A program made the translations under genes and the position numbers. 64,000 nt of DNA from Dimorphilus gyrociliatus. Its lineage: Eukaryota > Animalia > Annelida. The notes beneath the pieces were generated by a model. The model was given only the letters and a program-made list of their open reading frames with translations. It made no database searches and was not told the DNA's origin. This document shows positions 18,365 to 63,475 of the stretch, piece by piece. The DNA is taken from positions 380,063 to 444,062 of the forward strand of contig CAJFCJ010000030.1 in NCBI GenBank assembly GCA_904063045.1, in the 5' to 3' direction. Within the stretch, counting starts at the first letter, position 1. Each line of letters opens with the position of its first letter.

Positions 18365-20217
18365 TTTATCGAGTTCCGTTTGAAAGTCAAGCTGCTTCTG
18401 GTCTAACACGACAAATTGTGAAAGAACTGCTTAATTTGTAGTTGTTTCTAGGTGGCTATAAATTTACATCTTAAATTTACAACTTAGATTAGAACCTTTA
18501 ATAACCCTATTGTTAAGATTACTTAGCTACTTCAAAATAGATAAAATGATGAATAATTAACAATTTTGTATTCTCTTTTTATAAAATTACTATTTTTATA
18601 TAGATATTGAAAATTGCCAATAGGCAATAATCAAAAAGAGAGGCTAAGTAAAGAAGTATTTATAACTAAGTCACGAATAAATGAATACAAAACAATGAAA
18701 GAGTTAAGAGAAGGATGAAATTTTATTGCAACTTCAAGTGATGTTACTATGGAAATGTCATCATCATAATTTAAAAGTATTTTCGATATAATTTTAACTT
18801 ATTGTTTAACAAGTATGTCTATACGGTAAAATAAAAAATTCAATATAGTTAAGGTTAAATGAAAACTGCCAAGGTCAATAAAAAAATATTATGAAAGGGG
18901 AGGGGGTTTTTGAAAATGTTCAACTTAAAGAGATCAATTTAAATTTCGAAGAACCTTAAAAATTTTAAAAAGTAGAAATGTGAACCTATAGGTGGTTAGC
19001 TTTGAAATCAGATATCATTTGAATGTTTCCTCTATAAACAGCTTTTATGGCAAAAATTTTAGTGTTACCTTTTATCTATTAGATTCCGTTCTTTTGCATT
19101 TTATTATAAATATTTAAATTAAGTGTTCTAATTATAGATGAACTTCATTCATTGTCTAAAAAAAGATATTTTTTAGCAATGAACTAAAGTTATGATGTCT
19201 AATAGAGCTGTTTTTAACGTTACCTTGGAATTAAGTCATAAAACTTGCATCATATATTTAGATTTTAAATGTCAAGTACTGGATATATAGAAATGATATC
19301 AATTGAAAACTGTTTTTTAAAATATCCTTCTAGTTCTTTCATCAACAAAATTCATATTTATCTGCAAGTGTTTAATTGTTGAATTGTCTTTAGAAGTTAA
19401 GTAATGGACAGTAAGAAATTAATAGAAGTCGGATGAAAGGTTGTTAAAGTTATTTGATTAATAGTTTTTAAAGAAAAACATGGCTCAGCCTGATGAACTG
19501 GAGGCTAGTTAAGCGAGGAAAGTCGTATGACTATTTTGTCTGCAGTAATAATTATAAATATCTATTTAACGTATTTAATTATTAATAAATATATAGATAT
19601 ATAAAATAATAAGGAATTTATCTGGACATATATGGTGTATATATTAATATATACATACAATACATATAACGGAAACATAATGTTCTTAATCAACTACGTA
19701 CAACATTAATAACAACAAGTTATGTTTTTATATGAAATATATATAAATGTATATATAATTTTATATATATTCATAATTTTGTGTCTTGAAAACTGAGGAA
19801 TATTTGCAGATACAAAGAAATAGTAAAAGGAGCTTTTTCCTTTACAGTTGATGTAAAAAAAAATGCAAACGGGAAAAATAAAGAAGAATCAAACACGAGA
19901 TAAAACTTTTGAAAGTCTATTTTATCAATGTTAAAACGAAAAGAGGAAAAATAAGAAACAAGAAGAATAGTTTTATATATATATACATAAAAAAGATTGT
20001 TTGATCGTTCTTTTCAAATACTTTAGTATCTTAAAACAAATTTTTCTCACTTAGTCACCAATGAATGAGTATCTGTTCAATTTAAAAAAAGAAACTGAAC
20101 ATATTTCTTTTAAGAGTAGTCTCTCTTTTAATTGAAAATAAAGAAAAAAAACAAAATATGTAAATAGGAAAAAAAAGAATTTTTGAACGTTGCTACAAGC
20201 ATTTTTTCCCCAATTTT

Positions 20218-23200
20218 TTAAGCATTACTAGCTCCTCCTTGGCTGAGATTAATATAATCATGATTGACATCGTCATGTTTTAAGCTAGGTGGAATTGTAA
20301 TTGACTTTCGTATTCTGTGGGCAATATCAATAAAAGCAGGTCTCTTATCGGGATCGAAATTCCAACATTCTCTCATCAATTCATAACTAAGAATAGAAAA
20401 AATTCATAAGATAATTTCAAATAAAACAGATAAAAATATAAAACTAAAGAAAAGCGGCTGTAAAGAGCCAATTAAATTATAAAGTCATAAAAAATTCTCA
20501 CATATCATTGGGACAGACTTTCGGTCTAGCTAATTGCTTTCCAGTAGCAATATGATCATATAAATTTTTATTCTCTATATCTTTATAAGGTATTTGACCC
20601 CTTTGAAGTACTTCCCATAGTAATACGCCAAAAGACCACTAAAAATATTTCAATTTTAGAGAGTAACCAAAAATAAATAAAGATACTCACAACGTCCGAT
20701 TTCGATGTGAATTCCATACGTTCTAAAACTTCGATGGCCATCCACTTAACAGGTAACTTCAATTCTCCTGACTAGTGATTTTATCAAAAATTATAATTAT
20801 TAATAACTTTTCTTTCAAATTAAAAAACGTAATGTTTCACGCTACCGAATTATCTTTTCTCTTCTTTTTGGGATTCTTATATATTTCTTCAGAAAGACCA
20901 AAATCAGCTACTTTAACTACTTCGTCCATATCAATCCTATAGTATTTTTATAAAATTTTAAATGTTTTAATTAATCATACTATTAAATATTGCTATTTTA
21001 ATTTTACATACATGCAATTTCTAGCTGCTAAATCTCTATGAACAAATCTTAAACTAGAGATATAGGCCATACCATTTGCTATTTGTTCGCCATAGCCTAA
21101 TAATTGGTTTAAATAGAACGTCTGTAAATTAATTTAGAGACTATTAAATTATATTTAACTTTGTTATTTCATAAGCTTACTCGATCTTTATGCTTGATAT
21201 AATTTTTTAAATTTCCTAATTCCATAAAAGGCATAATAATCATTGGTGTATCGTAATCCCAAAAAGATACTCCTATTAAAGACAAAACATTCTGATGATG
21301 AAACTGGCTCATTATGGCTCCTTCTCTCAATAAACTTTGCGATAGTGAATCCTCTTTCTCAAAATCACCAAACAACATTTTTATTGCAACTTTTCTCATC
21401 TTTTTTTCATTATCCTGATCATCTTTATCTTTTAACTCGGCAACGTAGACAACACCGTAGTGACCTCTTCCAATTTCATCTTTTAAATTAATTAATTCTT
21501 TTGGAACTTGTACATTTTTAATCATTTCTTGCATTCGTTTTTGAGAATTAGATATTTCTAAAAAAGAGATGTAAAAAGAATATTATTATTCATTACTTAT
21601 TGTTGGTTTTATTAAGATTAATGTTATTCATGTAGTTTGTACCTTTTAACCCTTTTTAGGGTATGAATAATAAAAGAGTTAAGTGTTTTATGACTCATTT
21701 AGTAAGTATGTTATATACTATATAAATATATACGATATATAATATTTCAATCTTTTTTATGCGCAATTTGATTAAAAAAACACAAAAAAGGGCAAAGAAT
21801 AAAAAGGAAAGAAGAGACAGGAAATACGAAGTTAATATGCTTAGGACGTGTATGTGTGTACTTAGAGATATTCTAACAAAAGAGATTAAGAACGTGTAGG
21901 TGGAAAAAATAAAGATAGGAGAGCACACACAATCAAAAATAGGCGCAGATTATTTAAATAAATATATAAAATATATATAAATATATATATTTTAGTATAT
22001 ATTAGTATATATATATATATATATAAAAAGGCTATCCAAACACTAAATATCAGAAATATTCCAATATCTTTTTTATGGCTTATAAGCTATAAAGATAAGA
22101 AAAAAATAAATCTAATTTACCCGAAATGTAACCTGGATCGTCATCAATATCGTCCATCAAAGGTGGTAATAAGTTAGGTTTCATTAAGGGATGTTGTTGT
22201 TCTGAATAGTTTGGATTTTGAAATCTTGTTTCTCGTCTTGAATTACGATTATAAATATCCAAATCTGCCAAACCAGGTATCTTAGGTTTATTAATATAAT
22301 GTCTCTTTTTCGGAGAAGGTTTCCTGTACGAAGGTCTACGTTTGAATAAAAAACTGATAATTAAAGAGATTTTATATCTACTTTTGACGCTTTCGTAATA
22401 AAATAACAGCAGCTATTACAATAGCTAATATAACTGGAAAACCAACACTTAGACCAACTATTAGACCAATCTTACTTGAACTTTGATTAATAGGCTGTTT
22501 CGTTTGTATTTTTATTACTCTGATAGTTTGTAATTTACTTTTATATCTTCCCCAAGATATCTGCAAATACAGATTTTATATATTCGAAATATTAAGATTT
22601 ATAATAAGAGAAGTAAAATTAAATTACCAAAAAAAAGCAAGCGTTTAAGGCTGTTCTATTTAAAGTATTTTTCTCCAAATCGACAGAACAAAAAGGTAAT
22701 TCTTCGTTGTAATTAAAGTCACAATTTACATCGCAAACTTTAAACTTTACAAGCTTATATTCTTGGTCGGCTTTGAGCATTTTAAGTGAATTACCATCCA
22801 ACTATTTTAATAAATTATTAAATATAACTGCTTTAAAACAAAACATCGTTTTAAACCTACCTTCATATTAAAGTTGAATGATTTTGAAGTATCAGGAATG
22901 TCAAATTCTTGCATATGAAGAGTAGTTTTATTTGCTTTCAGTTGAATTGCTTTTTCTGGAAGTTTATAGAAGCGTAACATAAAATTCTCATTAACAATAA
23001 CTTTTTCATCGAATTTAAGAACGAATTTTAGTTGTTTTATGTCTGATCTTCCTGGTCTTCCGGGCCTTCCTGGTGCTGTAAAAATGATAGAGAAAAAAAT
23101 TGATTATTAATTTTTCAACAGAAATTATACTTCAACAAAAATAGTTTACGTCTAATGTCAAGATTTCTCTTTCCTCTGCTTAAAGGGCTTTTAATACCAC

Positions 23201-26200
23201 CACCAATATCTTTTCTAGAGTCTCTGTCAGGACCACCACGAGGAATCAATATTTTTCTATCGAGTATCGGAGTTTTACATTCAACTAATAGGGATGATTG
23301 TATTTTACATGTCTAAAGAAAAAAATTAAATATTTTTTATTAGACTGTCAGCTATTACAACTGAAAAGAAGATTAACTTACTTCATTGCTTTTAAAATCG
23401 GATGAAAGAGATGAAATAATAATATAAGCTGTTTTATATAAATCGAAATTGTTTCCATGCAATTTAAGGCTTAATCCACCTCTATAGAGAGAAGAAGAAA
23501 AGGAAAAATTAAAACATTTTTCTTTTGCTTATCTACATAAAAAACACTGATAATTACTCAAAGGGTGAATAAAATCCAACTGGAAATTGTAAATCTTTAA
23601 AAGGTCTAACAATCTTTAAAACTTTTTCAAATGAAAGATCAGACTTTACATCAATTTTTATAAAAATTTTGTAATTTCCAGGAACATTAGTATAACCAGT
23701 TTCAAATATTATGCAAGTATTGTTGCGGCTAAGTACATTAACTGAACTACTATTTAAGTAAACTTCAAGAATTGAACCAGTATCTAAATTCTCTCCAAGG
23801 AGAAATACTTTTGAAGGCGCTATAGAGATTTTTTCAGGATATACTGATGTTATTGTAACACTTTTTGGTGAGAGAACGTCCAAATAGATATTACTTTCAG
23901 TATTTCCCGTAATTTTAATCTTTTCCTTAGACGGTCCAAAGCTGCTTATGTTAACCGTACAATTAAATCTAAATAAAACAAAGAAAAAGTTTAATTTAAG
24001 CAAAATTGAAATTCTAATACTTACGAATAGAAATTAATCGAGTTTTGATCAACAATACAACGAAACTGGCCAAATTTAATCGAATTTAACAATTTCATAA
24101 AATTTAATCTGTATCCATGTACTTTTACACTCAGTTTAGTGCTTGCTAATGCCTTAGAAGGTTGGACCTACATATAAGAAAACAAGAGAATTTATAAGTT
24201 AATAAAAACTATTAAAACTTGATAACTTACGCCAGTAATATTATAACTACAATTATAAGATTCATCAAAATCTTCATCAACGCATTCGCTATCTTCCGTC
24301 ATAAAGCATTGTCTTTTTAAACAATTATCGCATCCTTTCATAAATGAACACATGTATAGTTCAACTGTAAAAAAAAAAGAATAATTACTTATTAATTGTG
24401 TTTAAATAATAAAAGATACGAAAACTAAATGACTTACTTATTGACGAAACTTTAAATTCAGTTTTTGAGAAAAAGATTTCCAATTTATAATCAGACATTA
24501 TATCTTCAACATTTGCGTTAATACTCATATAATCTTCCTAATGAGATTTAATGTTGTTAGTCTTGGTTTAAATAATTATTAATAATAAAAATTACCTTAA
24601 TTTTCTTTGAGTTAAATTTGCAACCATTGTGAAAGTCACTTCCAACTTCGCTTCGATAAATGTTAGCTTTAATACTTAATTTGCAAAAGTCGACTACTTG
24701 ATGCTAAATAAGGCAATTATTTTTAAGTTAATAAAAATCTATAGATATATAAACAAACCAAAGCTAAATATAAAGGTATTCGTAAAATATCCTCATTTGG
24801 TTTTAATATGAAGGATTTGTTCTTTAGCATTACAGATTCTTCTAGTATAGGGCAAACTTTTAAATTTGGCTGTTTCTGTTTTATGAATAGAATATTATTA
24901 TACTCGTAAATAATGATAGAAATATTCCTAGCATTAACCTCAGGAACAAGTTGACCTTTAGTACATCCGCGTGAATCTTCAACTTTTCCAATGCAATAAG
25001 ATTTATCAGCATAGGAGCACCAAGAACATAATTCTTGATACTGAATACATTCTTCACATGTTCTATTTAAATGTGAAATTAGATAGTTAGATAGTAAAAA
25101 ATAATTTATACTTCAATATTCCACATGAAAAGATTGGTATATTAAATTTCTTAACAATTTCTCCCGTTTTTGAAATATGCAATGTCAAAGTGAAATTATA
25201 ATAAACTGAAAAAATTAGACAGATTATTAAAACTAAATGTATTTATCATAGTAGTTTAATTATGAATAATACACTTACAAATAGAATTGAACTGAGGTAG
25301 TCTATAAAATTGACTTCTTCTCCTAAATCTACATTTTTGAATATTTTTATCAAAGATAAAAGTTCCATTAAATTCACTTAACCACCAGCTCTTTATATTA
25401 CAGAATATTCCTTTTAAATGATTTTTAGACTTTATCTTAGAAATAAAAATTGGAATAAGTTAGCATTTATTAAAATTTGAAAAATTTAACCTACTTTATA
25501 AATCATTTCCCTCTGTCGACCAAAACTTATTCGAGGTACCCTCAAAGAAATTTCACTTGGTATAACAGCTGCATCTTTAACGCAATCCTTAGGAGATTTT
25601 GCGAAAGTTTTGTCAATTGAGTTTTTCGAAGTTATCCCAACACACTTGTGTCTAAATAAGAAAGGAAATATGGAAAAAAAAACAAACATTGATAATCATA
25701 ATATAAAGAGGCGAGAATGAAAGAGAAAATACTTGTATCTTCTCAATGAAACACTAACTCTGGTGGTACGCTAGGATTATCATTCCAATGGCAAAATGCT
25801 TGTATACAACTTATGCACATTTTTTCTTGTTGACAATCAGGAAATGGTATTATCATTGGCTGAAAATATTTGTATATACAACTAAAGATATTTATAAAGA
25901 TAGTATGTATAGCTTACAGAAAATATACATGGTTCCGATTGACAATCAAATATTGATGCAGACAAGTAAATAGTATTTCTATTGTTAAATACTCTCAAAC
26001 CAGTTGCTTTAAAAGTATGAGTCTTCAAGTTTTTTTTGTATCCTTTGAGTTGCTTTGACTTTCCATTGTAAAGATACTATTAAAAAACAGATGTAGTTTA
26101 TGACAAGTATAAAAAAAAATAAATATATATACTACCATGTTAATAAAGCTCTTTTCATTTGCAATAGCTAAATAGTAGTTATCACGAAATCCAGTTATAT

Positions 26201-27374
26201 TTAAGGCAGCTATAGATGTTGGTCTGAAATTTTCCTCCAGAATGAACACATCATCTGCTTTTTGCTTAGGCAAAAGTAAAAAGTGATTTTTTTTACTAGT
26301 CTTTGCGGTAGCTGATTCAAACATTGCTTCTTTCGTTTTTACCTTTAAAGAAAGATAATAAATCTTATTCGAGTAGAATTTGTGAATCTTTTAACTAATA
26401 CTCACACAATTCTCCTTATCTACCCTTTCAATATGTCTTAATTTTGAAATACTTTCTCCTCGATCACATTTACTATTAGTATCCGTTATTATTTTGAATA
26501 AATCAGATAAATGAAATATGCAAAGGGCCATTGTTCCTGATGAACTTTTTGATACCATAAATACAGTTGCTGAATTCTTTTCCTTGGGAAAGAAGATTTG
26601 TTCAGCAATGATAGCTTCGTTGAAAGTTTCCAATCCATTTATTGTTTCACCTTGACATTCCAATGGCATTTCATTGTAAGAAGTTAAACCGTGGTGGGGT
26701 AATATAGTTGATAAAACTGTAACAGTTCTATTACTGTTATCAATTAAATTTCTATTTATAATAAAATTAATCAAATTCTCCCCAAATTTTCCAGAAAAAA
26801 TGGGATTCAATTTAAATCCTTCGAGATTCTTAGCTGGTCTAATTGAACCACAGTCAGTATAATCAATGGGCGACACAAATGGTATTATATTCTTGATGCA
26901 ATTGATCAACGACTGATTCGTTGATAAAGGAACATAAGATTTATAGTTGTAAACCCTTTCATCATCAGCTTGTAAAAGACTTACAACAGAAACTGAAAAT
27001 CCTTCAGGTGGGACAAAATCCAAATCTCTGCTAAGATTCTTATGTACTTTTTTACAAGACAGATGGTCTAATTTATAAACTATGCAATTTTGTTGACTTT
27101 GATTAGTTTGTGATCGACCACATATTAAAATATAACTGGTACTAAAGACCGTTGCTGTTATAGTTGCTTTTGGTAAATTACTATTTTGTCCTTCACAAAA
27201 GTTATCGCCATAGTTTCTTGCTTCAAAATTGGCTTTACTAAAATATATATCTTTATCGAACACAAAAAGTGTACGATCTTTCTTCGAAATATCGTAAAAG
27301 TTACGAATATAGGTTTTTTGGCAGTAGCAAGTGTGACAGAGAACAATACTTATCCAGAATAATAACTTTATCAT
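20218..27374 (-). CDS. MET/RON(HGFR)-like receptor tyrosine kinase with plexin-type ectodomain (Sema, 3 PSI, about 6 IPT, TM, kinase), about 25 exons
   Basis: ATG at 27374, signal peptide [18 protein letters not shown]. Sema in exon 27374-26406 and the next two exons. PSI-like Cys clusters at about 25830, 25060 and 24350. IPT strands (VQPSKA.., ITSVYPEKI.., [13 protein letters not shown]). [32 protein letters not shown] (22560-22382). Kinase motifs [59 protein letters not shown]. Tail DYINL, stop at 20218-20220. Confidence 0.9.
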
Positions 27375-29977
27375 CCCTATCAAAAGATAAAAATAGTGTA
27401 ATTAGTAATTTAATGCATCAAGTAAGTCTTCACTACAAAAAAATATACTTTGGATAACTTTTTTTGTTCTTAAAACTAAATAAAAAGTAAAATAATATGT
27501 AGTCAGGCGTTCGCACACTGATAAACTCAATAATGTATTTATGAACATTCGATAAGTGTATATAATAGCTGCCAATTAGTCCATTAGACTATGTTGGTCC
27601 ACCTTCATTATGACTCATTGAATGATTCAAGCTTATTCTATATAGCTTAAACAGCAAACACAAGTAAGGAAAAACAAAAGTGGAATTCGACCGTTCTACA
27701 AGCTGTCGGCCAATTTTGTTTGACGGTCGCTGATATCTTATCTCTTAACGGTCAACCGGTACTGTTCTGTTCACGAATTATCAGAACCGCACGAAATTGT
27801 CAAAGAGTTTGTGAATAAGCACTCAATCAAGTAGTATTTACAGTTTTCACTTACCGACTAGCAATATTTTTCAATTCAAAACTATTAAAATATTTTCAAT
27901 CCTCTAAAAAGTTGTTTTCATATCTAAATTAATTATGAATAAGGGTAAAATCGTATTAAAACATGACATCCGCTTTAAAAACACAAAAGATTAAGTTCTA
28001 TATGTCCACTAGATGGCATAAATTATCGTAAATTTTTTAATCCTTGTTTATTTCAATATTTGTTATTGAATTAATCTTTAAAAGTTTTCGATGGATCAGA
28101 ATATAGTTGACATGATAAATTGGTTTAAGAAAATTCAATGCATATACCTAGATTTAAGACAAAGAGCATTAAAAATATTTGCGAGTTGTACCCATATCTT
28201 GGTGGTAGGGTGCTAATAAACATCTCAAAAGTTAATAATAATATCAATTACTCATTTAATATTAGAATAAAATGATATTATGTATGTCATTTATGTTTAA
28301 TAAACAATAAACATTTATTTTGAATAGAAATAAGAAATCTAGATTTTCTTTATGACGGTTTTAAATTCTAGCCGGAAGAGGCGCTGTGTTTTTGCGATAG
28401 TTTTTCACTATTCACCCGACCACAGACAATGTCATTCACAATCTCCTGTCGGCGAAGCCGCAATTACACAGGCTGCTCGTGACGGTTTAAGCGTCGAAAA
28501 TTTCATTTACTCGTACCACCTTGGCCGTTTATTTTCTTATTTACTTTTCTACGGATATTTAGCCTCATTCTTTGAATATTTTGAACTTTTTTTAAAGAAG
28601 AAAGCACTATTATTGGAGATAGAAAACAAGTGGCGTTTTATTTGCCGCTTATATCGTTCAACTTCTTCATTGACAGAAAACTAGGCCATTTTAAGGTCTA
28701 ACTAGAAAATGTTTTACCGTGAGTATAGAATTCTCAAAATATTTCAAATCTTACGTAAGGCCTAGAAATTACGTTTTGACTCACCGGTCCATCTTCAACT
28801 TCGAATTGAATACACCTGTACGATAGTATGCTTTTGGCCTATACTAATATTACGCAAGATCCTTTATTTTTTTATTTTCTTTTTTTAAAAAAAATACATA
28901 GTTGTTAACTGCTTAATCCTTTTTGTATATTGCCCCCTTATCTGTTTAAGGTGACCAGAAGAATTTATAGATGAGCATTTCTCTCATCAAAAGTAGTTTA
29001 TTTACGACGATAACAGCCGTCAAATTGTTTAAATAGCGATTCTGTAATGTGTATTTTGTCTTAAATTTTCTAAAGTTTTTCATCCCTTTTTTTAAATTTT
29101 TTCCAAAAGATAAATATTTCACATTTTTACTTTCAGTTTAAGTTTATATCTTGTTTTTTTAAAAAAAAAAATATTCATGAAATTTGAACAATTTGTAAAT
29201 GGGCGGAGAGGTACGGAAAATTGTTGATAAAATATCTTGAAATTTACATAAGTCAACAGTCTCATAAACTATACGTCGTTTCATTAACTGAATAAACAAG
29301 AGTCGAAATCCATTAGTAAATAATGCGTTTAATAAGATCAAAGAAGGAAATCGTATCGTAAATCTGCCTTTAATCCTGACAAGATTTTTTGTTAATAGTC
29401 TAACAAAGCGAGAACAAGTTATAATAGGAGAGTTTCAATGAAGAATTCGTTTAAAGAGATTTTTAATGCCGTATTCAACGGTTGTTTATATAGTGAGAAC
29501 GCTTCAACATTTTGCATCCTGTCGCTAGATTTCATAAGTAAATAACATATTTCATAGGCCGAGAGGATTAGTATTACACCATATATTTGGGGGCTTGTTT
29601 AATGGGATTTCCTACTAAGTTTCCCGTTTTATCTTTTCGTATGAGCAAGATATCAGTATTTGTATAATGTTAGGAAAACATTGTAACTTTTCTTTTGGCT
29701 TTTGCATCTCTTCCTCCTTAACTTTCGCTCTTCTATTTAGATATTTCCCAGTCCACTAATTAAAGGATTAATCAGTAAACTTTCATTTTTTATCATCAAT
29801 GTTGTGTAGTCTAAAATAAGAAGATGGGTGGACAGGATTGAACTGTCATTAAACACTTCATACTGGTTCCAATTGTGTATATCTTTTTCGTAATTTAAGA
29901 CGGCTATATGTTGGAATTTAGATGAAAATCTCTTTTTTTCAGATCTACAACCGGGCGAGTGCAATCGGCAATAAAAG
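27375..29977. promoter_or_regulatory. Divergent (putative bidirectional) promoter region between the RTK and Plexin-A
   Basis: The two start codons face away from each other 2.6 kb apart. CpG-richer patches lie at about 27680-27830 and 28350-28860. No TSS can be placed from sequence alone. Confidence 0.4.
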
Positions 29978-50900: not shown

Positions 50901-53900
50901 TAAGAAAGTTGGTAAGAGAATAAAAGAATATTTTTCTCGACATGGGCGTCGTTAAAAACGCCATATTCACCATCTCGGCATGATGTCGGAAATTCTAAGC
51001 GCGTCATCTCTCTTAACAATAAACGTGACGACCGCTTTATGCCCAAAATTTGCCCGTATTGTACGAAAAATTGTGACAGTTTGTCGGCCCTATGACGCCC
51101 CTTACAAGAGCGTCTATACTCCCCTTCGATTTCCCTATAAATTCATTAAGTTTGTTCAATCAACGGCGGGCTTTACCAGACTCGGCAGGTGCCCGATTAG
51201 TTGCGTGCAAAGACATCAAAGCTGAAAGAGAGGAATGTGACGTAATTCCTTTCTTACGGGATGTCAGCTTCCCACTTTTGTTCCGCTTAATTCTATTACG
51301 CAACCAGGGGGACGTGTGTCATACTAACATTGTTCTTCAAGTTCAACTCCAATTTTTCTGTCTATCCGGTTTAAAGCCATCCCAGCTTAGGCGAATGGAG
51401 CAACTTAGGTGGCATCCATAATTACGGTCATTACTCTTAATCTGACTCGAAGGCTTCATTACCTTAAGAAACGAACACGTGCCGGACGAGAGATAATGTT
51501 GAGTTTGGTGGTTTAAATAAGCTAATTTTTTGTCACAGCTTGGATATAAAGTAACTAAAAATGTCCATATTCGTTAATAAGGGAAAGAATATACTAATAT
51601 ATCAAGTAAACTAAACTGGGTACCTTTATAGAATTGATTTATCTCAATTACTTGCTAAATACTCTAAATTGCCAAATAGAACGGAAGAATAACTTATTAT
51701 AGTAAAATGGAAAATTTATTTCACTAAAAATGTTAACGCTTTTAGTTACATAACAACTATAGTTAATTACGTAACACCGGTAATACATAGTTTTTAACGA
51801 TTGACGATTAGGAAATGGTATTATGTTAAAAATGGATAGTTAATGTACGTAGGTGTGCACGTTGTTTGTATGTACGTGTATCGTATATACTATCACAAAA
51901 TAGACGCTTATTATACCTATTTGTATGTGTATACTATATCTTTCCTCTATTTCTTTTCTTTCTTTTCTTTCTTTATTACTTTTGTTTATATTCACTGAAA
52001 TGGAAGGGGAACAAATAGAAGGAAAATAGGGAAAAAAAAGCAGAGTATATCCACTAAATCTCGATTCAGCTGTCTACTTAGAAAGCTCAAGAGCCATAGC
52101 AATCAAGTGCTTACGAATATTGCCTTAAAGAACCAATGTATGCTTATAAACAAAGAAGTATAGGTTCTGCAAATAGCATGTAAACTATTTTATGTGCATA
52201 TATTAGTGTATATTAGTAAACATTATATGTAAACAAATATATATATGCATATATATATATTTGTTTACATTTAGTGTTTACTTTCAACTAATTATATGAA
52301 TTAGTACTATTTACATAGAAGTAATAATTTGTTTATCTAGCGAATAAGTAAATAACATTTTACAAGGAGTAGAAACGTATTTAAATATTTATTTAAATTA
52401 AGCAAATTCTCAATAAGTCATCCATTAATTTGTGTTTGTTTGTATTTTATTTATTTTTTCCCCCCATTCTATCATTATTTAATAACAATTTTAAATATTA
52501 CTCCTTCCTTATTCCCTTCTCTTGCTGTTTCTAATCTTCACTATTTTCTTTCTTCATTTCTCCCTTTCCTTCCCAGACACATACACATGCACATACGCAC
52601 CATTCTTTTTTTGTTTATAAATACCTTTTCTATGAAATATAATAACATAATAACCCAATATCAGAGATAAAATTTTTCTTACCTGAGAGGTTAGCGGTTT
52701 AGATCTAAAAGAAAAATTATTAAAACTCATCAGTTTTATCTTTTAATTATTTACAATTAAAAGGAAATTTATATAAATTTATACATCATAGATTGCATAA
52801 ATAGATATATATATATATATGCCTAATGTACAGTACACTGTGTACTATACGTAAGCTTATTATATCGATACATAAGGTACATGTTTTTTTAAATGAGAAA
52901 AAACATTACTATAAGTATATATAGTAAGAGGAGAGTATCGGGTTATTATAGTGAATTTATATGGTAATTTAGCTTTTACGTGACTGTCCCATTCATTTCG
53001 TTCACCGCCCAGTATTGGTATAAATGCGAAAATGTCATGAGCGTCTAGTCGATTGTTTTATCTATAATATATGACGTTTCTAGTAATTTCTTGTGCCGAT
53101 GACTTTTTTTATATAATATATTGTATATATATATATATATATTTATAAATATATATTTTTTACCCTAACAGACAGCGTAGTCGTTCGATTGTCAATTCGA
53201 TTACAGGAGAAGGATTTCGTGTCTACGAATTTTACTTTCTACGATTGTTCTGTACATAATTCGTGAGTAGTCTAATTTAATTTATCTTTTAAATAAGTAG
53301 TTGAATTTCTTTATTCTTGTCTTTTATTGTAAAAGAGGAAAGTTAGAGGAAGTTTAGTTTTATAGTTTTATTTAATGAAATATCCTCTTCCTTTCACTTT
53401 CTATCTTTGTTCTTTAAAGATTTATCTTAGATTATGTAGTAGTCTTATTTTCGGCGGGAAGTTAGATTTATGATAAAATTAGCGACTCCTTCCGATAAAG
53501 GAAATTCTAGAAATTGCCCTAGGATTTACCTTCCCTAAGGGATTAGGAATAGAAAATGTTTTTTAGTTTTCTTTCTTGATCAATTCCACTTCTTACATTC
53601 TCCTTCTGTAAACAGATGCACTCAATGTACCACTAGTAGCCATCCGTGTACTTGGTGCGTTAAACAGCATACTTGTACTGGCAGAAGTGAAATTTGTGGT
53701 AGAAATGCTGTTCTTGTTACTGGAAAAGCGGTAAGAAACCATACAATTATTTATTATCATTGATATTTAAAGCCCTTTCATATTTTAAATATAGCTTTTA
53801 AAGTCTACAATTTTAATGTTTTCTTTTTCCTCTTTTTTCTCCAATTATAATCTTTAGATACCCAACTCCGATAGAGAAGGACCAGCAAATTGTCCGAGTT

Positions 53901-56900
53901 TTAAATATACAGGCTCATTAACAAATGGTAATATAATGATAGCGTCTACCCAACAAATCAGAATTGAAGTTGAAGCAAATAAATTATTGGTAAGTTCTAT
54001 AAATAAAATTAAATACAAATATCTAAAACGATGATTTATTATTAATTTTTTTATTTTACCCCTACTAAAACCTTCTACTTAGGATTTTCAAACGGATTTG
54101 CGTTGTGTTTTTATGGAAGAAGGGAGAAATGAGTATTTAAAAGCTCGTAGAAAAGGCAATAAAATCGAATGCGATACCAAAAGAGTATGTATTGCACATT
54201 TAATATATCTATATATACCATGTATTTACAGTATATAAAAATACTCATGTATCAAACGTAGATTGTACTTAAAAATTCTAAGAAGATTTACTGTTTATAG
54301 TAGTTTTAATGTCTGTTACGCAAGAGATTAGGTAACGCTTTGGCGATTGTGTTCGGTTGACTTATCTCTTCGTAAATAACTATTTACTAAGTTAAGTAGA
54401 AAGAAATTGATAAATTCTAACAAAAATACAAAAAATACAAAGACAAAAATCAATAGCAATCATCTTAAAAGAATGTAATATAAACAAGTGTATATTAAAA
54501 AGAATACAGCTTTGCAGTCTCTTGAAATATGAATACATAGCTTAAAGATTAGAACAAGTTGCGTGATGCTCTACTTTTCGCTTTTACAGTTTATATATAG
54601 ACAAACTTTCATAGTTATATAGTTTCTTTTATCTTTTTACCTATAATATCTCTTTCTCCTATTTATTAGTTCTCGTATAAAGAAGTCGTAGCCGAAATGC
54701 ACATTCCTTTCAAAATTGTTTGGGGAAGGGATAAATATCCTATCGACAATCCACAAAATATACAAGGTTAGCATACAAAGATTCTTATCTTTGAGTTATT
54801 AAGCTCCTATATATGAAATTGTTTTCATTCATCAAGTCAATAAATTTCTATCGTATTTTAAATAAATAAATTTTTCAACTTGCTCCTTTTCTCCTACAGT
54901 AACAATATACAAATGTTCATTGTCGGTAAATTGTGGTGAATGTCTCGCTCTATCTTTACAAAACAAATTATGTGGTTGGTGCGTAAGAGAGAAACGTTGT
55001 TCAACTAAAACAAAATGTTCAGAAGGGAGAGGAGAGTTTTTAAACAGCGAACAAACTTGCGACAATCCTAAGGTAAATATAAAAAAATTTGATATATTCG
55101 ATTGTCACTAGATAGTATCCTATTTCGTAAAGTATTAACCTTCGCTAAAGATTATCCTACCGCTTTACTCAATATTTTTCCCCTATACTATCCGTCTTCC
55201 TTTTCATTTTCTATTTATCTCCTTCTGATTTTCTTTCCAACGTCTATCTTAATTTCTATTTATATACTTATAGACTATTAATAATTTTATTCATCTCTTT
55301 TATAGATATTAGACTTTGAGCCAAAATACGGCCCGTTTGGAGGAGATACCAGTATTGTTATAACTGGTATGAATTTGGGTAAAAGCATTGATGAAATAGA
55401 AGTGTTCGTTGCTGGTAAAAGATGCAATGTGATCGATTACAAAAGACCCAGTACGATTACTTGTAAAAATGCTCCTTCAGTTAAGGATAACGAAAGTGGA
55501 CCAGTATTGGTAAAAGTAGCCGGAAAATACAAGGCAAAATCAAAAAATCCCTTCACGTACGTGGTAAGTATTAGCTCCTTTTTTACACTCTTGTAAATAA
55601 CAGAGGTGAAAGGGAAATGAAAAAAAAATTAAAAGTGGAAAGAGAAAAGGGCGGTAGGTAGGAGGGTAGTGGGTGGGTAGATAGGTTGGTTGGTGTGAAA
55701 AAAATTAGGTGTTAAGATATTGACTACTTTATTAGTTACTAACTGTGTTTTTTTCCTAGACACCTACTGTGAATAAAGTGGAACCATCGATTGGGCCTCG
55801 CTCAGGTGGTACGAAAGTAAAAATCTCTGGAGAATACTTAAATATCGGAACAAAGAAGACTGTGAAAATTGGTGATCGTCTTTGCGAAATAATCAGGTAA
55901 GGATCAAACGAATATTTGTTCATTTGTTTACGTGTTTTTACTTAATTCTCTTAAAAGAACCTACAATCCTAAACGTTTTTATGTAAATTAAGCTAGTATA
56001 TTAGATTTATAGGCTTTATTTCTCTTTCTTTATTTTGTTAAGATTGTATTAGATTGCAGTGAAGAGAGAAATTGAAGGAAATTTCAAGGGAAAGCTTTTT
56101 TTTTTAATGTAAAGATCCGAGCGGGGGGAAAGCGGGACAAAATAGACAGGGATTAGGGGAGTTGGATAAGACTCTAGAAGGGTTAAGATAGAGCGAATGA
56201 GAGAGGGGCGTTAGCGTGTTACCAGGATAAAAGAAAAACTATACATTCGCACTGTTTAATTTCTAATGCATTTACTAATGAAAAGTGTCGGAAATTTCAT
56301 ATTATCTTCTTATCCGAGTCTAAAGAGATTTGACTGTGAAAATGCTAACATCTTATTTTTTTCTCTTAATATAATTTAAGGAGTACCTCAACGGAAATGG
56401 TCATCAAAACTGCATCTAGCTCATTCAATGGAACAATACCAACTGAAGGATATCCGCAACGAATAATCGTATCATGGGATTTAAGCTTTAGCGAAGATTT
56501 CGAGTTTAAATACGTAGAGGACCCTACTGTCACTCGAGTATACCCAACAAAGACAATAATGAGGTATATATTACGATAATTGTTATAGATAATATTTTAC
56601 ACGCATCTTTTCGAAGAAAGATCTCATTTTTACGTTTAAATTAACAGTGGCGGCTTCAACATTAATGTGATTGGGAGCAATTTTGATATTATACAAAATC
56701 CACACTTCATCATGATGCTTCATGGCTATAAAGTACAAGCTGTAAGTTATAAGTATTTCAACCATACTTTACTTAAAAATATAATTAGGCAACATTTTCC
56801 ATCTATTTTATCTTTGACTATGTTGTCGCCTTATCTTTCCCTCTCTCTCTCTTTTATTCGATTTTCTAACTATTTCAAATATTTTTTTTTTCTTTCAGCC

Positions 56901-59900
56901 CTGTCCAAAGAAGAATCAAACGGCGATGACATGCATCATTCCCTCTGTAGTGGCTTTACGAAGTCATATGCGAAAAATAAATTATATGGTATTTACCAAT
57001 ATTGAGGCATTTTTATAGAAAATATCACGTGACCTTTTCCCTAACTATTTATAGATTAATGTAGGAGACAGACTGTTTCCATATATATATATTAGTTTTT
57101 AAACATCCAAATACTATCTTTATCTGAGATTTCCTCTTCTTTTTATGTCATTTTCATATCATTTATATGACATGTGGCTAGTATAACATTTTATGAATAA
57201 TCGAAAGCGTCTTCACTCATAAATTGTCGTTTTAAGCAGACAAGTAAGGAAGGAGTTGAGAGGAAATTGGAATAATGTCACGTGATGTTTTCCCTATGTA
57301 TCCCTAACCCAAAAAGGGAATATTAAAAAAAATAGTAGATTTATATCGATTCATTGTGTTTACGTAGCACGTCGAAGAGCTAGCCTATGGTTTTAAGTTG
57401 GCAAATGTGAAATCCGTTGAGAATCTGACAAAATACGACAATTCGAAATTTTTAGTCTACGAAGATCCAACATTCGATCTATTTGAGAATTTTGAGAAGG
57501 TCTACGATGGTAAAAAAGAATTAGCGATCGAGGTTAATAAAAGTTTTATTTAATTATTATCATTATTATTACTTTATAGAGTAATACTAATAGTAATAAC
57601 AGTATATTTTTCGTTATTTCTCTCTTAACTGAAATTAAATACTGTGGTAAGAAATCCGAACTCTTAAATCAAATCAATTTATTTTATAGGGAGAACGAAT
57701 CAACTTGGTACTAGATCAATCCAACTACGAAGTACTGGTTGGCGAAACCAACTGTACAATTACAAAAATTAGTAGTAAGCGTATAGAGTGCATTCTAAAT
57801 CGTATACCAAGCTCCAGGCACCCGAAACTTCTGGTAACTGTAAGTATATTATGATAACTTTCTGTTCGTATTATGCATATGAAATAAGGCAACGCTTGTA
57901 CCCTACTAATAAGATTAATGAGTAAAAGAATCACACGCTTAAAGAGGTTGATTCTCATCTTAATCTATAACCTGATAAATGAGAAAATAATTGTCATGCC
58001 TTTACCATATAAAGTCATATGAAACAGCCAGTTTTCGACCTCTTTCTCTCTCTCCCTCTCTCTCTTTCTCCCCTCCTTTTGCCTTTCCAACTCTCACCTT
58101 TTTCAGTTCCTTTTACTCTTTTACTTTTAATGTAAATCGTTAAAATGGGTTAATTATCAAACAAGTCATTTCTATAGGGGGTAAATGAGAAGATTAATAA
58201 GAATAAAAATTAATAGGTATATATAAAATGAATAGCTCTCTCATACATTTAATTCTTGTTAAAACACGACTAATTGGTCTTAACTACCGTTTGTCGATAG
58301 AAGCCCGTGGCGAGAACGATTAGGTGACGTCGATTTGCGTGTCTACCCCCTGCAAGGTTTCCACCCCAAAACTCTTTTTATTTCTATGACGAAGCGTCAA
58401 ATTCGTACGTGTTTATTACGTACTCGTTCCGACGTTTGCGAATCGTCGCGGGCGATTATTATACCCCGTCTGAACAAAGCGCTGCAGCCCCAGGGTAGGC
58501 AACATCAATCAGCCGATCGAAATCTTTGCAGTTCGCCAACTGCAGCACGCAATTATTAGTCATATCCTCAGCACAGGCGATGCAGACCAGTCACTACGAT
58601 TGATTCATATCTGTTTTGTTTTTCTCGCACGCTCCTTTTTTTTACCCCTCTTTTCTTTTACCCCTCTTTTCTTTTATTGCTTATACATCTTTCCTCTCTC
58701 TCTCTCTCTCACTTTTTTATATTTCCTTTACTTCTCTTTATCAATGATATTAACATTTTCTTATCCATAAAGGTTGGGGGGAATATTTACTCTCTTATAT
58801 ATTTTAATCATTTATGTAAATAGATAATTTCATTGAATGTATTAACTTTTTTATTTATATTCTGTTTCTTATTCTAGGTTCATCTCAAGAATTATCAAGC
58901 AAATAGAACCGAAATAGGTTACTTATTATATAAACCCTATGAGCAGGGTTTTATCTTATCGCTACCAGCTATCGTGGGAATTGCTCTAGCATGTTTGTTC
59001 GTTTTATTCATCTTTTGCTTTATCATCTTCTTTTACCTGAGAACAAAAGCGGAGAAGAGCAGGGCTGTAAGGAAAATTCAAATGCAAATGGACCATTTGG
59101 AAGCCAGAGTGGCTATGGAATGTAAAGAAGGTTAATTTCCCTTTACTATACAGTATTATATTGTTAATAGTAGGATGGTTTAATAATAAATGATGTATTA
59201 TGATAGAATGCTAAATTAAGTACCAAATAACAAGCTATTTTCGTATTTATTTTAATAGCTTTCGCTGAATTACAAACGGAACTACCCCAACTGGTTCCGG
59301 ATCACAGCTATTCTCAAATGCCGTTACGGACCTATCACTCTTTTTGTATGAAGATGCTCTTTCCTAATGGCGAACCGAGGTCTTTCAACAATGTGGCAAT
59401 AGATGTTAGTACAAGAAAATTGACTATATAATGAGATATTTTCTCGTTAACTTCCTAGTCGTCTAATGTAAACCTTTTTCCGAGATCTTTGCTAACGATT
59501 CTTTTTCTATCCTTTTTAGCTTCCAAGAGAACAATATTTTATATTGGCTGGCGTTCTTAAAAGATTTGAATCTCTACTACGTAACAAGACGTTTCTTTTA
59601 ACGTTTATCCGTACTTTGGAAGCTCAACAATCGTTTACAGTCAGAGAAAGGGTTAAAGTTGCTTCTCTTCTATCGATAGTACTACAATCGAAAATGGTTT
59701 ATTACACCGAGTAAGTATTATTTTCCTAGCTGGTGTTCCGAGTAATAAAAAACAGGTTACATAATCAGATGGGTCTAACGAAAAGAGGGTTATAAAAGAG
59801 GGAAGAAAAAATTCTTAAGCCTTTTTTATTAGTTGGCTTTGAGCTATTGAGCTAGTGCTATTACTTCACAGGGATTTTCCACCCCTTATGTTACTCCCCC

Positions 59901-61970
59901 TGAGAGAAATTTCTATTAAACTTTGTTTATTAAACGTTAGTAGTTATGCTACCTCGAGCACTCTACAACTATTTAAAAGTAGAACTAAAATAGAGAGTGA
60001 TATGATTATTACTTCAAGGATGCTTGGCTATCTAAAGCGGCATAATTATATCCCAGCAAGGATAGTTTTGTAATTAAATCTATTTAAATCATCTGCAAAA
60101 TTAGTTATAGAGTCCGTTTAAATCAATACAGTAGTAAATGGTGTTACTAAAATTTCTATAAGTTTTACACGTATAAATTATATATAAAACAATAACAACA
60201 ATAATAATAGTAATAACAATGAAACGATATGAAAATCTATAAGGAAATCATGAGTAGAAGAATTATCTCATCAATCTCTCCAACATTTACGCATGCACAT
60301 CATATTTTTTTCCTTTTTAATTTTCATGATAAATTGCCTTAATATATTTTCAAGTAGCACACGCCCCTTTTCCCTTTCAGCTCTTATATACATTTAATAT
60401 GTAATTTATGAGTTTTTAACTCTCCTCTCTCGCAAATTCTTATATTTTCTTCTCTTTTTCAGTATTGTTAAAACTCTGCTAAGTGATTTAATTGAGAGAA
60501 CTCTGAGTGATCCAAGAAATCATGCAAAACTACTATTACGAAGGTTTGTTATAGCCGTTTTCTAGAATGATATACAGTATATGTACAAGTATAGATATAT
60601 ATATATTTATATATATATACTGCAGAACTGAATCCGTTGCCGAAAAACTGCTCGTTAACTGGTTTACATTCTTATTATACAAGCATTTAAAAGAAGTTGT
60701 TGGGGAACCGCTTTTCCTCCTGTTCAAAGCAATAAAATGGAGAATAGAGAAGGGTCCCGTAGACGCCGTCACGAGCGAAGCAAGATATTCATTAAGCGAC
60801 GATAAATTATTAAGGCAAAGCGTTGATTTCAAAAGCTTGGTAAGACTTCTTAAAATATTCTGGTCACGCCACTCCTCGTTTCTTTCCATATTTATTTAAA
60901 GTCATTTCGTTAAATTATCTAATATCGCATATTTAACGATTTTCTTTGTTATTTTCTCTGTATAGACTATATTTGTTCTGGAAGCAGAAGCCCCCGTTCC
61001 AGGATGCAATCATCTACAAGTCAAAGTTTTGGACTGTGATACAATATCGCAAACAAAGGCGAAAATCTTGGATTCAATATACAAGAACACACCATACTCG
61101 GACAGACCAAAACCTAATGAATTGGATTTAGGTATTTATATTTTAATGTTTCACTTACTAACGCTTTGTTTTGTCTGGCTAATCCGCTTTTCATTTATAA
61201 CACGGATTTAATTATTAACTTGCTAGATTAATAATCTATTTTTCATATAGTTATTAAATAGATTCTATAAGCTATATACAGTATATATACAGTATATATA
61301 TATATATATATATTCTAATTGATCATATTAAATATAACTTAAAAACTAGTAAGACTTCCTTATCGTTTGCTTATTTTTTTTTTCTCGTTTGCCAAAGTAA
61401 TGAAAAAAAAAATACCACTGACTTTCGTATTTCGTTAAACAGTATTTTTCTTATCGAATTGACCTTTTTACGTCTACGTAGTTTTATTTTTATTTCCAAA
61501 ATTTTGCCACCTTTTTTTTATTTGATAAAGGAAGTAAAAACAAATTAAAGCAAACTAAAAGTTGGAAGTTTTTTCCCTATAAATCTATATTATTTAATAT
61601 GAACAAAAAATGAAATGGTAAATATTGTATATACAGAGTATATATAAATATATACATATCTTTTAATCAATTATTAGAAATTATCTGAACACTTGGTATT
61701 TTATGCACATGTTTTTTTTTTTCAAGACAAGCTATAGATATAATAAACTCTTAACTGTTAAAGGAACTATATATATATATATATATATACTATATATACA
61801 GTGTATATATATATATATATATTTATATACAACAAACTTAGATTTTCGCTTATTTCCGCTAAATTTTAGAATGCAAATAGAATAGATAAAAATCCGATAC
61901 AAAGACTGTGGTGGCCCTATCGAAATTCGTTAATTTATTTTTTGATATATTTAACGCGATTTTATCACGA

Positions 61971-62010
<40 letters not shown>

Positions 62011-63475
62011 GGAAAAAAAAGAGACAAAGAAGAAAAGAAAAACAATCATAATAACAATAATAAAAAGACTTCTATACAAAACAATTTATAGATTTCTTAT
62101 AATATTTGTTTTACACCTTTTTTTATTATTTTTGTTTTTTTTTTTACCCTTTTAATATTAAAAAATAATGGAATATTTCTCCTTGTCAACCTCTTTGGAA
62201 ATCCCTTTCTTTCCTTTTTCATTTTAACTATATAAAATGAATATTTCTTTTTTGGTATTATTTTAACTAATTAATTAATTTATTAATTAATTTTTTATTA
62301 AAAAAAAAAACTACAATGGTTTTATTTTTAATATGTAAAGTAGATATGAAAAAAAAATTACAATATAAATTAAAAACAAAAATGAACAGAGTTTTTGTTC
62401 TTTTTCTTTGTTTTTTTTTCGTGTTTTCAATTATCAAGACGAAAAAAAAAACGAAATAACGCCACTTCACTGTCTTTGTGTCATTGCAGTAATGCTCAGT
62501 ATTGACCCAAATATGCCGAAATCAGAGTGGAGAACTGGAATTCACGGTAGACTATTGTTGGCGGATGAAGATAAATCTTCCTTATTGGATGGCGGCTATA
62601 GGAAATTAAATACGCTGGCTCATTATCAGGTAAGTCGGTTGGATTGAATTCTTTTACATTTGTGCCCGGATTGGTTGTTTATTGCTTTTACGTCCACGAA
62701 AAGGTAAACGATGGTGCTGTAATGGCTCTAATGCCTAAACAATCTTCTACATATAATCTATCTCAAACGTCCGATAAATCAGGTTCTTCTCATAGAACTT
62801 ACGGTAAGTTTATCCTCTTGTTTTCTTATTCGTTTATCCAGATAAAGACTAAAAAATCTTAATGGAATCGTCTATAATTTATTAAGAGTTCTTCTCTCTT
62901 CATTTTCCAGAGGTTATCTCATCGTCGCCGTCTTTTGCCCGTTCATTATCACCCACAGATACATTGGAACATCCAAGCCATAATAAAACTTATCATCTTG
63001 TCCATCCGAATGGCACTGGACGCGCGAGATTACAAGCCGATAAAGGCAAAATGGTTTCAGAAGTCTACTTAACAAGACTTTTAGCCACAAAGAAAACTCT
63101 ACAACAGTACATGGACGATTTATTTGAGGCATTGTTCTCAACCTCTCATAGAGGAGAAGTAATGCCTTTGGCTATAAAATATATGTTCGATTTTCTCGAC
63201 GATCAAGCCATTCAACATGCTATTAGAGATCCCGATGTCGTCCATACCTGGAAAAGTAATAGTTTACCACTGAGATTTTGGGTAACGATCGTCAAAAATC
63301 CTGATTTTATATTTGATGTCTTCAAATCGAATACTACCGATTCTTGCCTAAGCGTTGTAGCTCAAACGTTTATGGAAAGTTGTTCAATGAGTGAGCAAAA
63401 ATTGGGTAAAGATTCTCCTGCTACGAAACTGCTATACGCTAAAGAAATACCGAAATATAAGAAATGGGTTGTTAA
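29978..63475 (+). CDS. PlexA: Plexin-A-class semaphorin receptor (3' end beyond the window)
   Basis: Exons 29978-31255, 32028-32159, 45653-45883, 46665-46842, 53172-53262, 53616-53730, 53858-53989, 54083-54184, 54670-54766, 54900-55072, 55306-55563, 55760-55896, 56381-56563, 56648-56741, 56899-56988, 57368-57532, 57690-57839, 58878-59130 (TM), 59259-59404, 59520-59711, 60463-60543, 60626-60839, 60966-61131, 62490 or 62526-62629, 62704-62802, 62911-63475 join with consistent phases. Plexin-A motifs [84 protein letters not shown] (GAP arginines present). No stop is reached. Confidence 0.93.
37056..38708 (-). mobile_element. Full-length Tc1-family (DD34E) DNA transposon, 1653 bp, in plexin intron 2
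   Basis: Imperfect TIRs CAGCCGCGGTCA(T/A)AAAT(A/G)T(C/T)TATACATGAAAAAAAA at both ends. TA target duplication at 37054-37055 and 38709-38710. Internal transposase on the minus strand. Confidence 0.95.
37374..38366 (-). pseudogene. Tc1 transposase (330 codons) interrupted by one in-frame TGA
   Basis: ORFs 37998-38366 (HTH, GRP motif) and 37374-37949 ([28 protein letters not shown]; 34 residues between the second D and E) are in the same frame. They are separated only by TGA at 37998-38000 and 16 open codons. Confidence 0.92.
39351..39370. repeat. (AG)10 microsatellite
   Basis: Read directly. Confidence 0.9.
40428..40440 (+). promoter_or_regulatory. Perfect DR1 nuclear-receptor element (AGGTCA-A-AGGTCA) in a plexin intronic CpG-rich patch
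   Basis: Exact consensus match, overlapped by CGTCA and 40 nt from an E-box (CACGTG at 40384-40389). Function not shown. Confidence 0.4.
61973..62000. repeat. (AG)14 microsatellite
   Basis: Read directly. Confidence 0.9.

Follow-up and report, generated by a model that had tools for sequence, protein, structure and literature searches.

A probable Met-LP receptor tyrosine kinase head-to-head with a Plexin-A gene in the annelid Dimorphilus gyrociliatus

Receptor tyrosine kinases in which a complete plexin ectodomain is joined to a tyrosine kinase were described under the name Met-LP in a survey of Sema-domain proteins (Met-like with plexin ectodomain; Junqueira Alves et al. 2019, PMC6374515). 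They were reported in the annelid Capitella teleta (Ctele Met-LP1, JGI 225337), the mollusc Aplysia (Acali Met-LP1, XP_012936725) and the starfish Acanthaster (Aplan Met-LP1-4), in addition to ordinary MET; MET orthologues, which have one PSI domain (in the annelid one PSI and four IPT), were kept as a separate class that co-exists with Met-LP (PMC6374515). In the published tree, lophotrochozoan Met-LPs group with a lophotrochozoan plexin in a branch that also contains Plexin-A proteins, and the receptors were argued to have arisen twice; in Acanthaster, Plexin-B1 adjoins Met-LP1, and semaphorins were suggested as possible Met-LP ligands (PMC6374515). These kinases have been named but barely covered in the literature since 2019. 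Here we analyse 64,000 nucleotides of Dimorphilus gyrociliatus DNA (assembly GCA_904063045.1, contig CAJFCJ010000030.1, positions 380,063 to 444,062 of the forward strand; hereafter the window, whose numbering we use), a stretch that is AT-rich at about 30% G+C. A plexin exon of the window matches that contig, and PMC10212961 gives the assembly as D. gyrociliatus. Its minus strand carries a 26-exon gene, hereafter the kinase gene, which very probably is the D. gyrociliatus member of Met-LP, with a plexin-style ectodomain and a MET-type kinase in one polypeptide, and which lies head-to-head with a Plexin-A gene.

An initial annotation of this locus had proposed a new kind of receptor, a view that is superseded by the 2019 description of Met-LP from Capitella, Aplysia and Acanthaster (PMC6374515); the Dimorphilus receptor is a further annelid example of an already described class. 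The annotation had also considered that three-PSI architecture and these introns might already be usual in invertebrate MET orthologues: the architecture is indeed published, with ordinary MET held separate and the introns unmapped there, and the annotation's functional ideas (a semaphorin link) were likewise in print (PMC6374515). New relative to that work are the mapping of the introns, an A-type plexin lying head-to-head with the receptor in a lophotrochozoan, the contrast in evolutionary rate between ectodomain and kinase, the missing activation-loop tyrosine pair and a furin-like RGKR/KGKR site in the membrane-proximal insert.

Like published Met-LPs, the receptor has a plexin-length ectodomain, three PSI-type clusters, one transmembrane helix, a MET-like kinase, no RasGAP and an annelid host; it differs in an ectodomain too diverged for the Pfam Sema, PSI1 and PSI3 models. 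As in the Acanthaster pair, a Met-LP adjoins a plexin of the class nearest to it in the published tree, but the starfish plexin is B-type and accompanies four Met-LP copies, whereas that of Dimorphilus is A-type and head-to-head with the single copy seen. Plexin-A proteins (human PLXNA1/2/4, fly PlexA) share its ectodomain domain order, and 13 intron positions and phases are shared with the neighbour; plexins signal through RasGAP (6e-82 in Pfam for the neighbour), which the kinase gene lacks, and the two ectodomains are 19% identical. With MET and RON the receptor has in common a kinase N-lobe that is nearest to that of human MET (1.7e-14), a KLPVKWMA motif, a C-terminal YxN tyrosine and the Sema-PSI-IPT logic. 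MET itself has one PSI, four IPT, a furin site within the Sema domain and the activation-loop tyrosines Y1234/Y1235; the Dimorphilus receptor has an ectodomain of about 1,240 amino acids, three PSI-like clusters and PKKKRK in place of tandem tyrosines.

The kinase gene, its transcript and its orthologue

The whole gene and its membrane-spanning and cytoplasmic parts are as follows.

20218-27374, minus strand: Met-LP-type receptor tyrosine kinase gene, 26 exons, 1,659 amino acids, ATG at 27374, stop at 20218
22382-22560, minus strand: exon 19, end of the ectodomain and transmembrane helix (about amino acids 1242-1266), from hydrophobicity
22121-22323, minus strand: exon 20, juxtamembrane segment with NPNY (amino acids 1307-1310); the NPxY is kept in the orthologue
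20218-21557, minus strand: exons 21-26, tyrosine kinase domain and tail, from Pfam and PDB

To build the gene model, joints shown by RNA were supplemented in the 5′ region by a chainer based on splice sites and codons, and exons were retained only with backing from RNA, the orthologue, Pfam or collinearity. Every intron is GT-AG and a single open frame runs throughout; the introns measure 49-115 nt beside one longer intron of 563 nt. The ab initio chainer over-predicted small in-frame exons and introns, and its splits of exons 1 and 6, each a single exon in the orthologous contig described below, were dropped. The product is a type-I receptor with a putative, divergent Sema-like head, three PSI-like clusters, one transmembrane helix, which is the strongest hydrophobic stretch of the protein and is directly followed by RKRQKK, and a MET-type kinase.

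That ectodomain and kinase belong to one gene is shown by a spliced transcript contig of 5,980 nt, which aligns to positions 20201-26200 with 0 mismatches. It omits every modelled intron of that interval at CT..AC boundaries (GT..AG on the minus strand) and links the IPT/ectodomain exons through the transmembrane exon (22382-22560) and the juxtamembrane exon (22121-22323) to the first kinase exon (21181-21557); by arithmetic, its length is consistent with the kinase gene model plus about 126 nt of 5′ untranslated region. Two exon joints have independent evidence from a coral-reef metatranscriptome contig. Neither a stop codon nor a start signal lies between the ectodomain and kinase parts, and the two separate transcripts that the initial annotation had allowed for were not found, the contig joining them. 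All 14 exon borders cited in that annotation, seven in each gene, lie at canonical AG-exon-GT sites with the lengths it gave, and its exon phases follow from the assembled models. The longest intron, 21558-22120 (563 nt, 832 nt in the orthologue; phase 1), separates the juxtamembrane exon from the first kinase exon. The plexin transmembrane exon likewise ends in phase 1, and the position of the 563-nt intron is compatible with an exon-shuffling joint.

The kinase N-lobe exon matches Pfam PK_Tyr_Ser-Thr at 9e-20, and in PDB human MET is its closest relative (1.7e-14), followed by MER, TYRO3 and RON; a language-model search with the kinase exon returned generic kinase fragments only. All catalytic motifs are present, including PVKWMA (within KLPVKWMA) and DVWSFG, and the cytoplasmic part consists of juxtamembrane segment, kinase and tail, with no RasGAP. 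Y1520 is the only tyrosine of the activation loop, which thus lacks a tandem pair; the orthologue has the same layout. This sole tyrosine, which we take to align with MET Y1230, is followed by PKKKRK, so that the equivalent of the Y1234/Y1235 pair is presumably missing. The catalytic loop reads HRDLAARN in the window (21012-21121, exon 22) and HKDLAARN in the orthologue (about 13547-13656 of its contig); together with the missing tyrosine pair, the latter hints at kinase regulation unlike that of a classical RD kinase. Near the C-terminus, at amino acid 1648, stands YINL, which is YVNL in the orthologue.

The orthologue comes from a second dinophilid. A phmmer search with exon 1 against 1.84 billion representatives returned a sole relative (P0001, 324 amino acids, 46% identity), which is encoded on genomic contigs of four runs; word-index searches with plexin exon 1, kinase exon 21 and IPT exon 14 returned only the proteins of Dimorphilus itself or of the sister species, or nothing. 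On the longest of these contigs (L001, 14.7 kb), all 26 exons of the kinase gene are found in order, and 24 of the 25 intron positions are kept together with their phases, intron 16 being absent. Upstream lies plexin exon 1 in head-to-head orientation, 85% identical to that of the window; the divergent pair is thus kept in the same order in a related species. Both RNA runs show splicing of intron 16 (23149-23076, phase 1), but L001 has a single open frame there; the difference is a recent intron gain or loss at a position not common to the plexin.

A plexin-style ectodomain and its introns

The ectodomain is divided among exons 1-18, and continues into exon 19, as follows.

25918-27374, minus strand: exons 1-3, signal peptide and very divergent Sema-like head (amino acids 1-445), the Sema assignment being putative
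25495-25859, minus strand: exons 4-5, PSI1-like cluster (C454 to C502) and start of IPT1, from cysteine pattern and intron position
25112-25435, minus strand: exons 6-7, IPT1-length spacer, exon 7 holding the first cysteine of PSI2, from phases and lengths
24939-25062, minus strand: exon 8, PSI2 with canonical C-x-W-C core, from a sub-threshold Pfam match and phases
24438-24875, minus strand: exons 9-11, IPT2-length spacer, from phases
24231-24364, minus strand: exon 12, PSI3-like cluster (C770 to C803), from cysteine pattern and intron position
22628-24167, minus strand: exons 13-18, about 400 amino acids of IPT3-IPT6-length sequence and a poorly conserved insert, from TIG and collinearity
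23166-23177, minus strand: furin-like RGKR site (amino acids 1073-1076) in the membrane-proximal insert, KGKR in the orthologue

At about 1,240 amino acids the ectodomain has the length of a plexin ectodomain, with PSI-like clusters about 110 amino acids apart and about 400 amino acids between PSI3 and the transmembrane helix. PSI1 has the pattern C454-x5-C460-x2-C463-x4-C468-x-W, preceded by a phase-0 intron 8 codons ahead of the first cysteine, identical to that at plexin position 45653. Exons 6 and 7 (157 and 94 nt, phases 0 to 1 and 1 to 2) compare with plexin exons 46665-46842 (178 nt) and 53172-53262 (91 nt). PSI2 reads C611-x5-C617-x2-C620-x6-C627-x-W-C630, and exon 8 has the phases, 2 to 0, of plexin exon 53616-53730. 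The phases of exons 9-11 (0 to 0, 0 to 0, 0 to 1) are those of plexin exons 53858-53989, 54083-54184 and 54670-54766. PSI3 has the pattern C770-x5-C776-x2-C779-x4-C784, and a phase-1 intron lies five codons ahead of its first cysteine, likewise at plexin position 54900. A blastp comparison with the neighbouring plexin gave one collinear match from PSI2 to IPT4/5 (amino acids 605-1042 against 626-1082, 19% identity, E 1e-5).

Pfam was run exon by exon, and in these single-exon runs it recognised only the kinase, one TIG and a sub-threshold PSI2, leaving Sema, PSI1 and PSI3 unrecognised. The TIG match lies in exon 14 (2.8e-5, above the cut-off; 1.1e-5 in the orthologue), and the length of exons 13-18 suggests four IPT domains there. 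For PSI2, the window sequence matches PSI_integrin at 0.0035 and the orthologue matches PSI at 0.024, both under the curated cut-off. The earlier proposal of three PSI-like clusters in plexin order is thus borne out by conserved cysteine patterns, and by Pfam to the extent of the sub-threshold PSI2. The RGKR site is kept as KGKR in L001 despite unconserved surroundings, and the protein may be cleaved there. The membrane-proximal insert (23076-23177, spanning the end of exon 16, intron 16 and the start of exon 17) also has a PGRPGRPGR run.

Comparison with L001 separates the ectodomain sharply from the kinase. In protein identity the kinase stands at 86.5%, most ectodomain segments at 42-46% and the short PSI3 cluster at 60%; nonsynonymous divergence (dN) is 0.45-0.51 for the ectodomain, 0.083 for the kinase and 0.089 for plexin Sema exon 1, a rate of change in the ectodomain roughly five times that of either the kinase domain or the plexin. 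Synonymous divergence (dS) amounts to 0.67 for the plexin exon and to 1.3-1.6, near saturation, for the kinase gene. The kinase domain is under strong purifying selection. In the ectodomain, 45 of 48 cysteines and 5 of 5 tryptophans are conserved beside an overall identity of 44%, as are all three PSI-like clusters, a pattern which suggests a preserved fold beneath a changing surface; Pfam models would fail here because the sequence changes fast while the fold is kept. The kinase gene introns align with those of L001 no better than shuffled sequence does (56% against 50%), and the plexin side is 85% identical to L001. A hyper-divergent haplotype or hidden paralogue on the kinase side, to which this contrast could point, was ruled out given a 44% difference at synonymous sites even in plexin exon 1, which indicates constrained non-coding DNA on the plexin side and a kinase side that is not unusually diverged.

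We also compared the introns of the two ectodomains, 18 in the kinase gene and 17 in the plexin. Their phases, in order and with unmatched introns in brackets, are as follows.

Kinase gene: [0] 0 0 [2] 0 1 2 0 0 0 1 0 [2] 2 0 [1] 0 0
Plexin: 0 0 0 1 2 0 0 0 1 0 [0] [2] 2 0 [0] 0 0

Same-phase pairs lie within 3, 6 and 12 MAFFT columns of each other for 7, 10 and 13 of the 18 introns, against random expectations of 0.7, 1.3 and 2.4, and the observed count was not attained in any of 20,000 permutations. Matched introns occur in the same order as well as the same phase, and plexin positions flank all three PSI-like clusters. Where paired introns are 4-12 columns apart, the offset reflects slack in an alignment of 19% identity, and counts made relative to the cysteines agree; one more pair, the fourteenth, falls at the end of PSI3 and is shifted solely by an alignment gap. 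The intron sharing is real and far beyond chance, as the initial annotation had held in saying that the exon structure of the kinase gene tracks that of the plexin. The 13 common introns would constitute gene-structure evidence that the ectodomain descends from a plexin gene.

The Plexin-A neighbour and the intervening DNA

The plexin and the spacer occupy the following positions.

27375-29977: spacer of 2,603 nt between the two start codons, head-to-head, with the same layout in L001
29978-32159, plus strand: Plexin-A exons 1-2 (29978-31255, 32028-32159), Sema domain, from Pfam, PDB and L001
45653-57839, plus strand: Plexin-A exons 3-17, PSI1-IPT1-PSI2-IPT2-PSI3-IPT3-6, from Pfam and canonical splice sites
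58878-63475, plus strand: Plexin-A transmembrane exon and cytoplasmic RasGAP exons, borders approximate

Plexin exon 1 matches Pfam Sema at 1.6e-19, and in PDB its Sema domain is nearest to Plexin-A1 (6.7e-27) and to A4, A2 and fly PlexA (1e-22 to 1e-27), with Plexin-B1 at only 1.6e-7. Exons 3-17, predicted from open frame, splice sites, Pfam, collinearity and positive coding scores, give Pfam matches to PSI (1.7e-11), TIG_plexin (9e-10), PSI_PlexinA-B (8e-6) and a further PSI (3e-6), as well as to TIG (7e-14, 4e-7 and 5e-5); two short exons of the plexin model have no independent homology match. Plexin_cytopl is matched at 6e-82 and 2.5e-24, and because the former match stops at profile position 388 of 441, the plexin C-terminus lies beyond the window. 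With a Sema domain nearer to A- than to B-type, three PSI and TIG_plexin, the neighbour is a genuine plexin of the A type, and PDB, Pfam and the opposite strands uphold its earlier identification as a Plexin-A head-to-head with the kinase gene.

Non-coding DNA from 28400 to 33945 (spacer, plexin intron 1 and the first 1.8 kb of intron 2) is 76-96% identical to L001, and an 80-nt block near 28640-28720 is unchanged. The plexin-proximal half of the spacer shows the same 76-96% interspecies identity with no open reading frame kept; a frame at 28352-28684 was ruled out as a gene, being broken in L001. No Rfam family was found in the window, and the conserved spacer blocks gave no convincing RNA fold. 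The interval 28400-33945 resembles densely packed, conserved regulatory DNA, which may account for the retention of 13.5-kb and 6.3-kb introns in the plexin next to a gene with short introns. Plexin intron 2 also holds a Tc1/mariner-type transposon remnant (37048-38716) with 105-nt inverted repeats (37048-37152 and 38612-38716) and, on the minus strand, reading frames for a DDE_3 transposase (37374-37949, 5e-19) and a weak Tc3-type helix-turn-helix (37998-38366).

Origin, alternatives and significance

Our favoured explanation for these results is that an A-type plexin gave rise to the ectodomain through an ancient local duplication in inverted orientation, that the RasGAP exons would then have been swapped for MET-type kinase exons, and that the kinase gene and Plexin-A may have been linked ever since. 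In the receptor itself, a ligand at the Sema-like head would bring two receptors together, the kinases would phosphorylate each other, and adaptors might dock at the C-terminal Y-[I/V]-N-L (Grb2-type) and at the juxtamembrane NPxY (PTB-type); with only the Y1230-equivalent in the activation loop, activation could not use the MET Y1234/Y1235 pair. The ligand is probably fast-changing or lineage-specific, the ectodomain changing about five times faster with its cysteines and tryptophans fixed, and a conserved semaphorin is a clearly less likely candidate. The semaphorin-activated kinase suggested by the initial annotation is weakened in one respect, that of a conserved semaphorin-binding role, because the ectodomain evolves very rapidly.

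This interpretation must be made cautiously, and several observations weigh against it. The head gave no match in Pfam or PDB sequence searches, its first 323 amino acids being blank in Pfam; a PDB profile search with the two-row exon 1 alignment returned nothing relevant; an AlphaFold model of exon 1 from that alignment was unusable (predicted local distance difference test score, pLDDT, 33); and hhalign with two-sequence profiles gave weak matches (E 0.003 to 0.03). The first 445 amino acids are accordingly no more than tentatively Sema-like, and PSI1, PSI3 and five of the six IPT are assigned from cysteine pattern, spacing, collinearity and introns and not from a domain model. All plexins might have inherited the shared introns from a common ancestor, in which case these would be uninformative about this neighbour, and an identity of 19% leaves the adjoining Plexin-A a candidate for, not the established, closest plexin relative. 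Orthology to the Capitella and Aplysia Met-LP1 proteins is, likewise, presumptive. In favour of the Sema-like assignment, all 10 of the best family-bearing neighbours in a language-model search with the head are Sema families, and its motif ALC-x17-C aligns with AVC-x17-C of the plexin.

The initial annotation had envisaged a plexin ectodomain joined to a MET-type kinase and kept beside its plexin, either as a lineage-specific chimera or as a relic. The joined gene stands; a recent lineage-specific chimera is unlikely because the ectodomain is 19% identical to the plexin and 24 of 25 introns are kept in a second species with near-saturated synonymous divergence. The bolder proposal, that the pair preserves the trace of the event by which lophotrochozoan Met-LPs were founded, in which an inverted duplication of an A-type plexin was followed by the RasGAP-to-kinase swap and held in place by conserved non-coding DNA, is in our estimate possible but rather unlikely.

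An independent annelid- or dinophilid-specific fusion, not orthologous to Capitella or Aplysia Met-LP, would represent a third origin of the architecture. The exhaustive search found no ectodomain relative beyond the sister dinophilid, the kinase gene still adjoins a plexin, and the published tree already argues for multiple Met-LP origins (PMC6374515). However, the rapid evolution of the ectodomain accounts for the missing matches, its 19% identity to the plexin makes the duplication very old relative to the dinophilid split, and an annelid Met-LP of the same architecture is on record (PMC6374515); we regard an independent fusion as improbable, though it is the strongest competitor to Met-LP membership. 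An ordinary annelid MET or RON orthologue, with extra cysteine clusters that are chance or degenerate inserts, is far less credible. The kinase is indeed nearest to human MET, and Pfam finds at most one weak PSI and one TIG, but the ectodomain of about 1,240 amino acids holds three C-x5-C-x2-C clusters conserved in the orthologue, is collinear with the plexin from PSI2 to IPT4/5 and has plexin intron positions round all three clusters; moreover, the published annelid MET, with one PSI and four IPT, co-exists with Met-LP (PMC6374515). Finally, a false fusion by transcript assembly of two adjoining genes, a plexin-like membrane protein and a kinase, can be set aside almost entirely, since the RNA evidence, an assembled contig and not single long reads, crosses each joint at canonical sites in one frame through transmembrane, juxtamembrane and kinase parts, no stop codon or start signal intervenes, and exon order and phases are the same in L001.

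Taken as a probable Met-LP, the receptor provides a second case of a Met-LP beside a plexin, in another phylum and with another plexin class, and this bears on how such receptors arise. Should the founding-event proposal be true, then, with the starfish pair, the same plexin-to-kinase conversion would have happened twice by the same local route, and a compact, tractable animal would be at hand for testing it; the very small genome and short introns of Dimorphilus make the pair easy to clone and test. The locus is also a warning that domain-based surveys can miss receptors whose ectodomain escapes Pfam. The combination of a fast-changing ectodomain, a nearly frozen kinase and an altered activation loop argues against assuming semaphorin binding and MET-like activation for this receptor.

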